From Nageia nagi (lineage: Eukaryota; Plantae; Pinophyta): DNA of 64,000 bases. The notes beneath the pieces are model-generated. The model saw only the letters and a list, made by a program, of their open reading frames with translations. It searched no databases and was not told the origin of the DNA. Every line of letters starts with the position of its first letter. Positions within the stretch are counted from its first letter, which is position 1. Shown piece after piece: positions 47,101 to 53,239 of the stretch. Made by a program: the position numbers and the translations under genes. The stretch covers positions 103,416,001 to 103,480,000 of the forward strand of contig JBITNC010000001.1 of the NCBI GenBank assembly GCA_050084985.1, in the 5' to 3' direction.

Positions 47101-48105
47101 CATCATGATTCTTCCTTAAGGGAACATTATAGATCATTTAACCTTGATCATAAATAGACTCGACTCAACAGTGCCCCTCCCCCTCCTCATTTGGTGAAGG
47201 AATGAATATAATTGGTGCTAGCTCTTTCTTCCACATTAATGGATGGGATGTTCACTCGACTCCATGTGAATCCATAATGGGCTGGAGGGATTATGGTTGT
47301 ATTAATGATCTTGGTGGCAATTACCATAGTGACATTAATGACACCAGCTTCATCGTACTAATGATGAGGGGTGACATATTCCAATCCCCCTAATGAAGGG
47401 GAACACATATTGAGCTGATAAACCCAACCAATTTATCATCTAAAGTCAAAAAGTTAATGACAACTAATAGAACAAATATTCTTTTCCCATTTCCCTAATA
47501 AAAATTGGCATCGCTATCCCTTTTCTCCCACACAAAGCATGTGGGAGTAAGCTGCTCTAATCAAAGTAGCCTTCTCCCTCATAGTCCCACCAATGCGGCA
47601 AGGGGGAGCTTTTTCCGAGGCGGAGCGACACTCACCGTTCACGCGAACGGTGGCGAGAGGGGACCGTTTTGGGTCTCGAATAACCTTCGCCGACAAAACA
47701 TACAAGACCTCAGACGATTAATCATAGAAAAACACTTGCTAATCAACGAAGTAGCAGACTCTGCTCGTCCCTTCTACAAATCCCTTGTATTCTTCTAGCG
47801 ATAGATTATAAAAATTCCTGAATGGAGCCCTGATTAAAATAATGATCGGCGATGCCAAAAGGCTTAAGATCAGTGGTCGTTCCAATTACCAAAAAGGATG
47901 GCAGTTATAAAAATTCAAGAACATCACAGCATCATTATTTTTCAACTCTCCATTGCTCCACAATGGATGAATCTACAATCAATGAGGCTACTTTGAAAAC
48001 AGGAAAAAAAACATCTTGGAGAAGTTGAGAATCTTGAGATGAAGATGCCAAAACTGTCTGGGAAAAGAGTACATCTGAATACAGGCCAACAGATAGGACA
48101 TCCAA

Positions 48106-49577
48106 CTAGTTTTCAACTGTCTCTGAAAAATTGGAGAAAAATCCATCATTCTAGCTTTGAGAGATGTCACGACGCTCTTACACAGTGTTAGGTCATCCTT
48201 GAGAAATTCCTCGTAGACTTCTAAACAATATTTCTGCCTTTGCTCTGCTTCTTCCTTGCTCATCTTTCTCAAAATGGGGACAATTCTGTGCATCTGATTT
48301 GTGGGAAATTGCAGAATGCATCGATGCCACTGTATCAGAGTATCAAACGGCTTCACGTAGTTATCAGCTATGAGCACTGGAATTGTTCCTGCGCCGAGAA
48401 TCTCGATAAATCTGTAAGAATTGGGCTGAATGCCAGCAGGTGCAAGCCCAAACGTAGAGTTCATCAGATCTACATAATCCTGCCTATCATAGATGGCTTC
48501 ATCCTCAGTGCAGTTGGCCCCAGTTTGGGTTCCTTCTTCCTCCACTCATCATTCACAGGATGTCTGCAAGAAACCGCAACGATGATATCTTTACCGTTGT
48601 GCATACTTCTGAAGGAGTCATGGCTTCTGAAAAGCCCTTCACCCTCATGTCCTAAGTATCTCAGCCCCCTAAAGGTCAGAAAATATTTTCTGTCGAAAGG
48701 CTTGATTTTCTGAAACTGTGTGGGCCGAATGTAGGGTGGAAGGGTAATGCTGATGTCAAAACCTGGACGATAGATTGTTTGATGCATGTCGGTGATGAGA
48801 AGAGAAGCCATGCCTATGCTCTCCATGGGCATCCCTGTCAGTGCCCACTTATCGTGAAAGGAGATCAAAACATGGTTTAATCCACCATTCCAGTAAGGAA
48901 GCGTGCTGGGAGGCGCTGGTGGTGGATTGTGATATGGATCCAGGAGGTCCATATACACGAAAAACAAGCAGGCCTTGTTGGGATCCTTGGTGAACCATTT
49001 CGTTGAGTTTATCCATTGAAAGTACCTGAAAACACACAAAATATAACTCCAATGTTTCAATCAAAACCGTCTTTTTTCAAATAACGACCTCCCAAACTCG
49101 GAACAAAAAACAATTTTACCAGAATCTCCGAAATGGTAGATCATAAACGAAGATCTTGATGTCATCCATGTTTTCACATCGGGAGTAATTGAAGCACACA
49201 TCCATCGAACACAGCGGAAACAATGCTGGATAATGCCAGACCGTATTTTCTTTGTACCATGGGCCTTCTCGTTCGCATGGCTTCTCTATCACCTTTTCCT
49301 TCACTATAATTTGTGGTGTTGTAATATTAGGGGACGTGGGCGGACAAGAAGATTGAGAAACACATAGAGTGCAATTGCAGGTCTTTGCACCTCCGATTGA
49401 GAAGCTTCCATTACGCGATCTGCAATAGTCGTCAGTGTTCACCAGTTTGTGGAAAGAGTTTACGATTGACGGTCGGTTATCCACGAAAAATATGACGTCC
49501 AAGCTGAAAACGCTAACAACTATAACAACGATGACGAAGGGCGTGAGAATGGAACAAATTTTTCCTCCGACTGACAT
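48106..49577 (-). CDS. EXT1-like GT47 glycosyltransferase, copy B; exons 49577-49120 and 49025-48106; two apparent -1 frameshifts (459 aa if corrected)
   Basis: Paralogue of copy A (roughly 75-80% aa identity by eye). 94-bp GT-AG intron at the identical codon. Missing single G at 48518-48521 and at 48143-48144; restoring both aligns the stop with copy A. Confidence 0.85.
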
Positions 49578-51994
49578 TATCGCAGCTTCTGCTTGACAAA
49601 CTTTACATACATAAGCAATAAAACTACTTGAGAGGGGGGGCGTTGAAGATCTTAGCAAATGGAATCGAAGAGTTTCCTTATGGACTGGCATGTCAGAGAA
49701 ATACATAAATTAAGGCGAGGATTATAAATGTGGAAAGTCCAAAGGCAAGGAATTACAGCTCCCAAAAGCGCAATCGACAGAGCCTCGGAAGATTCCCATC
49801 ATCCCATGAAGGTCAGTTGGTAAAAGCCATGTACATAGATGGAAAATTAATCTAATATTAGGGGGGTAAATCTTTAGTGAAGAGCAAAGTAACGTATTGT
49901 AATACTATAATTTTAAGTTAGGAGATAGTGTATGAGATTGCGAAATAAGAAGAATAGAATTTTGAAGTGTTGGTCACGAGTAAAGTAATTTGTAAGCGTA
50001 GGATATGATGTAATTATATTTTTTTGTGTTATGGAAATAGTAATAGACATAAGTAGTACAAATTCTGTGTGAGTGCAAGGATGGACATAGTCATGAGATT
50101 TGCAGTCCCCAAAGTCACAAAAGTAAAATATGTTACGAAACATATTTAATGCTAATCACAAGGGAGGACATGAACATAGTTGATATGGATGCTTATGCTT
50201 GTAAACATGATATAATGAGAAGCAACAAAATTGGGTTGCCATATAGGATAAGATACATGCATTAGATGTGTGGGTGCTTGAGGTTGTAATAGCTAAAACG
50301 AAGGAGCTAGTCTAGGTGGGAAAAAGTTATCCGTCATGTGTACTATTCAGGTTCAACCTCACAAAGTACACTCTAAAAGCAAAAGTGTTTGACTGTCAAG
50401 GATAGGCATTGTAGATAATCAAGATGTTCTATAAGATTAATTATCAAGGTCAAACAACAACATACATGATCGTTAACTTCCATGATCTAGGTGCTTACCT
50501 CAAAGTGTTTGTCACACTTGATAATAGAATACAAAAATGTAAAGATCAAGTCCACCAACTTACTTTCATAGATATGTAATCCAACCATTAGAGTGGCTTC
50601 TAGAAGTAGATGTGTGTATGTATGATGTGATGTCAACAATTATGGATAGAAAGCTACAATTAATTTCTATAAGTTAATATAAAGTCCTCTAACATCCAAA
50701 TATGAAGTGATATAAGGATAAAATTGATAGATCAAAGTTAAGTGTATATGTGATATAGGTTGAGGAGAAGATATTTTAGAGAAGAGAGTTGGAGAGAAAT
50801 GTGAAATTAAGATTCAAGTAAACTTTTAATTGTAATTGGAACCTATATGATGCCTATAGACATTTGTTTAGATGGGTGACATGAGAGGATTGAGGACCCT
50901 CCACTTTTAACTAAAATTTTCTTGCATCATATCTTATAATTAACGTAATTTGAATTTATAGCATAATTTTGAAGACAATATAAATAAATTATATTGTATT
51001 CTCTTTGATAAATTAATATAAAATTTAAACTTTTGTTAGGTTGCATATATTATTTATCTATTTATTCAATATATTATCTTAATAAGCCACTTAAGCATGA
51101 ATACTAATTATCATATAGCACTTTAATGTTAGGCCATATAAACATGATTATGATGATACCTTAATTAATGTTTGCAAGAAAAAAAAATCATATACTATAT
51201 CCTCTTATCTCACCTTGTGATTATGATCCCTTTGTTATAAATTTCATGAGGCAATTTAGAATTATGACTATCCACATCAATGTGATATAGCTCATAAAAC
51301 TAATTGAAGTTGAACTCCAAATTATTTGTATATAAATAAAATTTACCTTATTCCTCTATAGTGGCTTGGCATCAAGGTATAGATCAAAAGAAAAATTATA
51401 TTACCTCACCTACTTTATGCTAGGTGTTACCAAATCATATGAATGATCTTTGGGTAAGATAAATAAGGAATGTAGAGGTTGAGTGAAAGGTTCACCACTC
51501 ATATGAGGAAGAGAAGGTACTTAGAATACTTAAATTGTACAAATATAAGAGGGAAATTGGGGATTCTAAACTTTCATGGAGGAATTAGAAATTGCCCAAA
51601 GTAGAAGAAGGGGAACTATAGAATGTGACCCTAATGATACTAAAGAATAAGTTAGTGAGAAAGAAAAATATAAAGAGAGGGTGGTTTGGGCTTCTACAAA
51701 TCCTAAAATTAAACTCAAGATACACATGCCTAACTATGTAGGAATCTTACATAGAGAGGAGTTGATAGACTTGATCTCACAACTAGAAAAATAGAAGTTG
51801 AGAATCTTAACAGAGCTAAGATAGTTGATACAAGGATGAAATAACATGTATCCTCATGGTGGGATCAAGTTCAAAAGGAACGAATATATGAATGTAAGAA
51901 GAAGATCAAGTCCTAAGATAAGATGGTGGAAAAAGAAAAAAAAATTACAAGTACATAAATCCCTCATGCTATTTATAAAGTTATGGAATCTCCC

Positions 51995-52262
51995 TGTTAA
52001 GATCTTGGGTGTGTGGATTCACTAATAGGTCGACCTTTTGGTGTAATGGTTCATAACATTTGGTATCAGAGCAGGCCATACGTCCCAAGTTTGAATCCCC
52101 AGAAAGGGCTACTGTGGAAAGGGCTACCTAGAGAAGACTAGAGTGAGAGCTGCCACAAGTGAGAGCCACCGTGGACGTCGGATGCGGAGCATGGTGGAAT
52201 GTTAAGATCTTGGGTGTGTGGATTCACTAAAAGTCGACCTTTTGGTGTAATGGTTCATAACA
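51995..52262 (+). mobile_element. TRIM (terminal-repeat retrotransposon in miniature), 268 bp
   Basis: LTRs 51995-52058 and 52200-52262 (TGTTAA...ATAACA; 1 indel and 1 substitution); TSD CTCCC at 51990-51994 and 52263-52267; PBS TGGTATCAGAGC at 52061; purine-rich GGAGCATGGTGGAA before the 3' LTR. Confidence 0.97.
52032..52110 (+). ncRNA. tRNA-like / Pol III promoter module inside the TRIM (not a functional tRNA)
   Basis: A box TGGTGTAATGG (52039-52049); B box GTTTGAATCC (52089-52098); acceptor-like stem GACCTTT/AAAGGGC; D-stem GTGT/ACAT; T-stem poorly paired. Confidence 0.6.
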
Positions 52263-53239
52263 CTCCCATAAAAAGAGGTGAATATAAAGGAGTATGTTAT
52301 AGAGTTTTATTGAGTGATTATTAGAATTTGATAATCTAAGAGGAGTACTAATAAGGTTTCTAGGTATATTAATAGCTTAAGGCTAATAATCTAGGATGGA
52401 ATTAGGTTTTTAAAACTTCACTTAGTAAAAGAGGCCTACTAGTATACCCTAAATGATTGGGAGAAACTAATTGATATTATGCATTAGAACTCTAGTACAG
52501 GATGAGATCATGAGAAACCATTCCACAAGCATGAAAAAATCTCAAAGAAAGATGATGGTGAAGGGTTGTGTAATACATGAAGATGAAAATTTTAGTATAA
52601 TAGAGGTTGAAGAAATGAATCTAAAGCTTGAGGTCATTGATTCAATTGCACTAGTTTTGAGCGGGCCTCAAGGGCATAAAGCTTATGAATACATAATTAT
52701 ATAAGACATAACTAAAAGAGTGATAATAAAATAAATATTATAAAAAAATAGAGATAATAAAGTATATAGTCCTCCTCCAATAACTAAGCATAAAGAGAAT
52801 TTAATGGTTAAAAGAACCTTAGTAATGCTTAGTGAAAAAATGAACCTTGGTAAAGGAGAAGCATATTCGAGATAAGGTATAAAATTATAAATAAACATAC
52901 CAAGATCATTATGAAAAGTGATAGTATTGACAACTTAGTATCCACACATATGTTAGAGAATTTTATGTTTAATACAATTAATCATCCAAACTTTATAAAG
53001 TGTTATAACTACAAAGAGATCATTATGTACTAGTGATAAAAAATGTAAAGTGAACATAGATATTGGTGGTTATCATAATGATGTTTGGTACAATGTAATT
53101 TCAATGGATGCTTACCTTGTTATTTTAGTAAGACCATGGAAGAATTATATAAATATGATCCATGGTGGAAGATGGACCAAAATTATAATCTACCAATAAT
53201 TATTCTTATCCCATAATAAGAGTGATAAGAATCTTCAAG

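Follow-up and report, generated by a model that had tools for sequence, protein, structure and literature searches.

A 268-bp TRIM from Nageia nagi with A- and B-box-like motifs on the two sides of an LTR boundary

How can LTRs of about 60 bp sustain a retroelement? The question is raised by a short LTR retrotransposon located at positions 51995–52262 of the 64-kb stretch of Nageia nagi DNA analysed here (hereafter, the window). The initial annotation had recognised in it a tRNA-like Pol III promoter divided between the LTR, the PBS, and the internal region. We asked whether the motifs in question form such a promoter or belong to an otherwise ordinary TRIM.

Structure of the element, its copies, and its insertion site

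The stretch 51995–52262 is confirmed as a complete 268-bp copy of a high-copy plant family of TRIMs, i.e., of non-autonomous miniature LTR retrotransposons (Table 1). The 64- and 63-bp LTRs, the CTCCC target-site duplication (TSD), and the iMet PBS listed by the initial annotation were all re-read in the sequence, and the element exhibits every trait by which a TRIM is recognised: short direct LTRs, a PBS and a polypurine tract (PPT), a TSD of 4–6 bp, a size below 1 kb, the lack of coding sequences, and the presence of multiple copies. Its ends read TGTTAAG...ATAACA. Two nucleotides (TT) separate the 5' LTR from the PBS, which extends as AGG up to position 52075 once one missing C is allowed, and then agrees at 15 out of 16 positions with the published 16-nt form of the tRNA-Met site, TGGTATCAGAGCCAGG (bioRxiv 10.1101/2025.07.25.666790). 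At the other end of the internal region, a purine-rich ..GGTGGAA immediately precedes the 3' LTR, and the pre-LTR strings ..TGGTGGAA and ..TGGTAGAA recur across other copies of the family. Concerning the coding capacity, the longest ORF within the element is 42 aa long; the search for its homologues was negative, and a protein search against Logan contigs did not retrieve any candidate.

Table 1. Features of the element and of its borders (positions refer to the window).
Feature	Position	Strand	Basis
Target-site duplication, left copy, CTCCC	51990–51994	+	Read directly; identical to 52263–52267
5' LTR, 64 bp, TG..CA ends (TGTTAAG...GGTTCATAACA)	51995–52058	+	Direct-repeat detection; left edge of contig pile-up at 51995
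T4 run, 5' of and overlapping the A box; repeated at 52240–52243 in the 3' LTR	52036–52039	+	Base reading
A-box-like motif TGGTGTAATGG, perfect fit to TRGYNNARYGG; repeated at 52243–52253 in the 3' LTR	52039–52049	+	Pattern match
LTR terminus GGTTCATAACA + TT spacer + 12-nt PBS	52048–52072	+	Exact match in unrelated LTR retrotransposons (16 metagenome loci, at least three other families)
Internal region, 141 bp, non-coding	52059–52199	+	Read directly; ORF listing
PBS TGGTATCAGAGC, complement of the plant tRNA-Met(i) 3' end	52061–52072	+	Read directly; motif location
B-like box GTTTGAATCC	52089–52098	+	Pattern match, 39 nt downstream of the A box
AAAGGGC, "acceptor" partner of GACCTTT (52032–52038)	52103–52109	+	6/7 Watson–Crick pairs
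Weak polypurine tract GGAGCATGGTGGAA, abutting the 3' LTR	52186–52199	+	Read directly
3' LTR, 63 bp, TG..CA ends	52200–52262	+	Direct repeat; right edge of pile-up and empty-site joint at 52262/52263
Target-site duplication, right copy, CTCCC	52263–52267	+	Read directly

The direct-repeat comparison of the two LTRs revealed one substitution and one 1-nt indel. With two differences over 64 bp, the insertion is young, although the differences do not yield an exact date. They are confined to positions 52023–52032 of the 5' LTR (AATAGGTCG) and 52228–52236 of the 3' LTR (AAAAG-TCG); other copies carry C or T at 52231 together with the extra G, which indicates that the derived state is the one in the 3' LTR of this copy.

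The search of sequencing runs for the stretch retrieved five DNA contig sets of low share, with no RNA set among them. Contigs from four organisms (one run each) were aligned to positions 51400–52900 at a likeness of at least 80%; this resulted in 83 to 529 aligned contigs per run, many of which were 95–100% identical to the stretch. In all four runs, the depth was zero or single-copy in the flanks and rose to hundreds or thousands exactly over 51995–52262, with hundreds of contigs confined to the element. No further copy was found inside the 64-kb window, and family-specific patterns gave zero matches both in genome contigs and in viral contigs.

Moreover, the most distant of the four organisms provided one 977-nt contig harboring both flanks (83–87% identity), in which position 51928 is joined to position 52263 with 90 other letters in between. 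Hence, the 268-bp element is absent from this relative (empty site), whose right breakpoint coincides with the end of the 3' LTR. On the left side of the insertion, the 66 A-rich nucleotides 51929–51994 are replaced in the relative by the 90 letters, which are unalignable; the target region is a fast-evolving or indel-prone stretch. The exons of a GT47-type glycosyltransferase gene are located at 47988–49706 on the minus strand (first-exon ORF, 49116–49706). Relative to the start of this gene, the element is inserted about 2.3 kb upstream, a typical location for a TRIM.

The reading that we prefer, with about even chances of being right, is that of an ordinary TRIM whose promoter-like motifs are coincidental or related to the primer. 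Lacking genes of its own, the element would be copied by the proteins of an autonomous LTR retrotransposon: tRNA-iMet would anneal at 52061–52072 and prime the synthesis of the minus strand, the purine tract before the 3' LTR would prime the plus strand, and the integrase would work on the TG..CA ends, giving rise to the 5-bp CTCCC duplication. As for transcription from a 64-bp LTR, read-through or a minimal Pol II initiator would be the default guesses.

Candidate Pol III promoter motifs and their state in the family

Three motifs stand in the register of a tRNA, i.e., an A box, a B-like box, and a pair of complementary heptamers (Table 1). The A box reported at 52039–52049 by the initial annotation is a perfect fit to the consensus, the acceptor pairing GACCTTT/AAAGGGC was recounted and again amounted to six Watson–Crick pairs out of seven, and GTTTGAATCC does lie in the internal region at the distance reported. 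Furthermore, as far as the B-like box is concerned, the geometry agrees with the statement that only the 5' LTR has a B box downstream. The B-like box itself is imperfect: read together with the A preceding it, it matches GGTTCGAATCC at 9 out of 11 positions, and the invariant C56 and G52 are both replaced, the former by a T.

An A box followed by GTTYRANNC within 25–50 nt occurs once in the 64-kb window (either strand), versus 0.02 occurrences expected from shuffles; no second candidate with both boxes, and in particular no tRNA-derived SINE, was found in the window. In shuffles of the element, a 9/11 B box within reach has a probability of about 0.005, and a stem of at least 6/7 pairs in any of four registers one of about 0.006; these values, like the 0.02 occurrences above, are post hoc and rest on flexible definitions. 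Nevertheless, the coincidence of the three motifs in a tRNA register is unlikely to be due to simple chance, and it is not trivial.

In principle, the three motifs might be parts of a type-2 Pol III promoter that drives the TRIM and is split by the LTR boundary, a possibility that we consider doubtful. In such a layout the A box belongs to the U5 of the LTR, the B box is internal, and the tRNA-iMet PBS stands where a tRNA has its anticodon arm. Both boxes, the one in the 5' LTR and the B-like one in the internal region, would be bound by TFIIIC, and Pol III, starting a few nt to about 10 nt ahead of 52032, would pass a leaky T4 at 52036–52039 and terminate at the T4 at 52240–52243, giving an RNA of about 210–220 nt. 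R would then measure about 11–18 nt, U5 would correspond to 52040–52058, and U3 would be about 30 nt long; the 3' LTR, having no B box downstream, would stay silent, leaving the 5' LTR as the only one with promoter competence. As a design, such a cycle would be self-consistent and workable, and we put it forward as a hypothesis.

The single A/B pair of the window, the correct spacing of the B-like box, and the complementarity in the acceptor register speak for this split promoter; so does the tiny LTR, which has no clear TATA box and no other obvious Pol II promoter. For the ordinary TRIM, conversely, the motif coincidence is a point against, and a 64-bp LTR without a clear TATA leaves Pol II little room. 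The replacement of C56 and G52 tells against a functional B box. However, GTTTGAATCC is also the B box in the LTR consensus sequences of four fungal Helenus elements, i.e., TRIMs that harbor a tRNA-like sequence in their LTRs and bear a Pol III promoter (Kojima 2024, PMC10886601), which implies that a T at position 56 alone does not exclude its use. In addition, the run of the relative contains joints that go back, e.g., from 52128 to the LTR start at 51995. They point to variants or tandem forms retaining the PBS-proximal half of the internal region (52059–52128), and the B-like box is embedded in the part that is kept, as would suit a promoter.

The T4 runs can be read in both directions. 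Within the element, TTTT occurs only at 52036–52039 and 52240–52243, and the variant strings show that other copies have kept the T4. The only runs are thus located where a terminator would define R, with none in 52040–52239, and the T4 of the 3' LTR could act as a terminator giving a short R, which is a point against the ordinary TRIM. The absence of an internal T4 was also considered as an argument for Pol III in its own right, and rejected, since it is expected from composition (P = 0.70). On the other side, the same T4 is situated within the transcript proposed, directly ahead of the A box, where it would end transcripts at about +10; it would have to be leaky, and we counted it in favor of an ordinary TRIM.

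The state of the family was read position by position from the variants listed for the four runs. At least 19 positions of the element vary, and nearly all of those listed represent CpG decay pairs (52081/82, 52100/01, 52113/14, 52151/52, and 52156/57). At the decayed CpGs of this copy (52047, 52101, 52113, and 52151), the undecayed base accounts for up to 42–81% of the depth, depending on the site and on the run: C at 52047 for 39–77% in other copies, G at 52101 for about 50% in three runs, and C at 52151 for 56–81%. Positions 52052/53 are CA in this copy and CG or TG in strings from relatives. Other copies mostly have C at 52047. Since both T and C at this position fit the Y of the consensus, the A box of other copies remains within it, in agreement with a promoter function. 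Nevertheless, some copy groups read TTTTGATG or AATGATT, variants that break the A box and weigh against such a function.

The B-like box gave a different picture. According to the initial annotation, it would be GTTCGAATCC after one CpG decay. Unlike the other decayed CpGs of this copy, position 52092 does not show any T>C change among the variants listed; T appears to be the prevailing state of the family, although a minority of copies may carry C outside the variants listed, and the premise that GTTTGA derives from GTTCGA is unlikely to hold family-wide. Neither C56 nor G52 appears to be restored in the variants listed. Lastly, the G>A change at 52032 (21–57% of the depth) breaks the first acceptor pair, and no compensating change at 52109 is present among the variants listed.

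The proposed tRNA fold, the PBS, and the primer tRNA

The initial annotation had interpreted positions 52032–52110 as a 79-nt tRNA mimic. Under default settings, ARAGORN did not retrieve any tRNA from the 64-kb window. Exactly 52032–52110 is called only when the threshold is lowered to 72% of the default, with a 4-nt "anticodon"; as support for a tRNA, this call was discarded, being at the level of noise (193 calls across the window at the 72% threshold and 118 at 75%). The Rfam tRNA model gave no match listed at E ≤ 10 in the 651 bases 51800–52450, an E-value that is scaled by 4227 families and thus bounds the score only roughly to less than 15 bits. The 79 nt fold with z = +0.96, 169 out of 200 shuffles folding at least as well, and the cloverleaf has an energy of −1.1 kcal/mol if the T stem is included and of −3.6 if it is left out, compared to −13.8 for the minimum free energy structure, which is an unrelated fold. 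The T stem has one pair out of five, in accordance with the poor pairing already noticed in the initial annotation.

Hence, neither ARAGORN and Rfam, whose negative results weigh against the split promoter, nor the shuffles and the cloverleaf energy lend support to a fold, and all of these results favor an ordinary TRIM. The 79-nt "tRNA mimic" resembles a tRNA in its motifs and not as a folded tRNA-like unit. It should be considered that the promoters of tRNA-derived SINEs and of Helenus need not fold as tRNAs, and this counts against the ordinary-TRIM reading. Nonetheless, the initial annotation had tied its promoter to a family consensus keeping GTTCRA and the stem pairing; with T at 52092, the T stem just described, and the uncompensated G>A at 52032, such a consensus is probably lacking.

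The central part of the 79 nt is made up of sequences that occur in other LTR retrotransposons as well. A metagenome scan with the pattern formed by the LTR end and the PBS retrieved 16 loci, belonging to at least three other LTR-retrotransposon families and none to this TRIM family; they have only 25–38 nt in common with the element, i.e., GGTTYRTAACA, one variable base, T, and the PBS. The metagenome locus L008:4393–10292 is a complete 5.9-kb Ty3/Gypsy chromovirus that has 333-bp LTRs and encodes, in this order, protease, RT, RNase H, integrase, and a chromodomain; over the 25 nt of the LTR terminus, the TT spacer, and the iMet PBS, it does not differ from the TRIM. This identity may be due to chance or to a common integrase and primer requirement. 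The 5' LTR starts of the two elements differ (TGTTGGG in the chromovirus and TGTTAAG in the TRIM). At another metagenome locus (L002:1250–1730), 77–80 nt ending in GGTTTGTAACA recur 346 bp downstream and are partly inverted at 1688–1729, which points to a further LTR element, miniature or tandem, in this unrelated plant contig.

Since the terminus, the spacer, and the PBS are common to other LTR families, tRNA ancestry is required neither for the entire "anticodon arm" nor for the proposed D arm in its 3' half; for an ordinary TRIM, the middle third of the 79 nt would simply be an LTR terminus followed by a spacer and a PBS. This bears on a further scenario, which we deem unlikely, namely that the motifs are a decayed relic: an ancestor would have taken up a tRNA- or SINE-derived sequence, as proposed for Helenus, and the later fixation of the LTR boundary and of the PBS inside it would have left an A box, a damaged B box, and a partial acceptor pairing that no longer work as a promoter. 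The joint improbability of the three motifs, found alongside a broken T stem, a T at position 56, and detector scores at noise level, is what such a relic would look like, and the insertion of a SINE into the LTR of a TRIM is the published model for the origin of Pol III-promoter TRIMs (PMC10886601). On the other hand, no specific tRNA or SINE donor was identified, the window harbors no tRNA-derived SINE with both boxes, and the middle of the "tRNA" is accounted for by the generic retroelement parts. Moreover, a functionless remnant is not expected to keep a perfect A box family-wide, unless the same bases also serve U5.

The B-like box, in turn, can be compared with the primer. In two out of three unrelated iMet-primed families, the 10–25 nt that directly follow the PBS look like the reverse-complemented T arm of tRNA-iMet (TTTCGATCC in L003/L013, TTTGGATTCTAGGG in loci of the L001 type). 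T arms being almost palindromic, such stretches look like Pol III B boxes. Eukaryotic initiator tRNAs carry A54 and A60, and the T-loop query was built from these residues and from the stem pairing with the 16-nt PBS. When positions 52085–52101 of the element are compared with the reverse-complemented iMet T arm, 11 out of 17 agree (P of about 0.017 over 40 offsets); as regards the T loop, this query relies on textbook knowledge. The B-like box is thus nearly as close to the complement of this arm as to a B box, and, in an ordinary TRIM, it may just as well be left over from complementarity with the T arm of the primer.

A stricter version of this idea, which appears quite improbable to us, is that the B-like box is a displaced primer contact, with 52085–52101 deriving from, or pairing with, the T arm of tRNA-iMet, and with the A box and the stem being coincidental. 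Extended PBS contacts are known for Ty1. The T-arm match, the two iMet-primed families having such a sequence right after the PBS, and the continuation of the PBS itself as AGG would fit a contact of this kind; however, the B-box match has a slight statistical advantage, the distance of the stretch from the PBS exceeds that in the tRNA by 12 nt, and the T-loop part of the query is textbook knowledge.

On the whole, as judged from the sequence, it is more likely that the element is not driven by a bipartite Pol III promoter.

Comparison with known elements and significance

The element shares with the canonical plant TRIMs Katydid, SMART/FRetro129, and CcaRetroS9 the short TG..CA LTRs, the iMet PBS, the PPT, and the 5-bp TSD, as well as the lack of ORFs, the high copy number, and the location near genes (PMC3281118, PMC4717578). 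Its 268 bp fall between the 292 bp of SMART and the 233 bp of CcaRetroS9, which, with LTRs of 52 bp, is the smallest TRIM published (PMC3281118, PMC4717578). SMART LTRs possess a TATA box (PMC3281118, PMC4717578), whereas the LTR described here has none and carries an A-box motif instead. The motif strings of the element did not match any sequence in the supplement of a survey of TRIMs in 48 genomes.

Two precedents for TRIMs with Pol III promoters had been quoted in the initial annotation, Cassandra with 5S rRNA sequence in its LTRs and Helenus with tRNA-like sequence in its LTRs, and both are real (PMC10886601). Helenus shares with the present element the TRIM architecture, the 5-bp TSD (in plants and fungi), and a tRNA-type A box, but both its boxes lie inside each LTR (PMC10886601). 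In the present element, by contrast, the LTR holds the A box and the internal region the B-like box, with the PBS in between. The tRNA-like unit of Helenus is recognised by tRNAscan-SE or Censor (PMC10886601), whereas ARAGORN and Rfam were negative here. The size also differs, Helenus elements being 311–1263 bp long, with Selaginella as the only plant case (PMC10886601), and the strings of the A box and of the iMet PBS of the element are both absent from their consensus sequences. Pol III transcription was not shown in the description of Helenus, and Cassandra is the sole Pol III-promoter TRIM with experimental support (PMC10886601). Cassandra resembles the present element in being a TRIM with an internal promoter of the small-RNA-gene type; it is 565–860 bp long with the 5S sequence in the LTR, whereas the 268-bp element has no 5S rRNA match at E ≤ 10 in 51800–52450 (Rfam). 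Tra­nscription units of the tRNA-derived SINE type (SINE2) are likewise short and non-coding and carry, close to their 5' end, an A box and a B box separated by about 40 nt, this head being followed by a LINE-related or A-rich tail; they possess no LTRs, PBS, or PPT and are copied by the machinery of LINEs, whereas all of the LTR-retrotransposon hallmarks, including the 5-bp TSD, are present here.

The initial annotation had also suggested that the split architecture may be undescribed. In agreement with this, neither the paper by Kojima (PMC10886601) nor the full-text literature searches revealed such a layout; given that both boxes of Helenus lie inside the LTR, the split layout would be undescribed in the searchable literature.

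If the split promoter were true, it would represent a third architecture for Pol III-promoter TRIMs, beside Cassandra and Helenus/Ajax. It would explain how LTRs of about 60 bp sustain a retroelement, with the conserved T4 defining a very short R. The authors of SMART could not identify termination signals (PMC3281118, PMC4717578), and a split Pol III promoter would provide a tidy answer to the question of how TRIMs with LTRs of 50–85 bp are transcribed with a repeated R. If, instead, the motifs are due to chance or related to the primer, we are dealing with an ordinary TRIM insertion whose sole use would be that of a polymorphic marker. It would also carry a caution, i.e., that the PBS-proximal sequences of iMet-primed elements naturally resemble B boxes.
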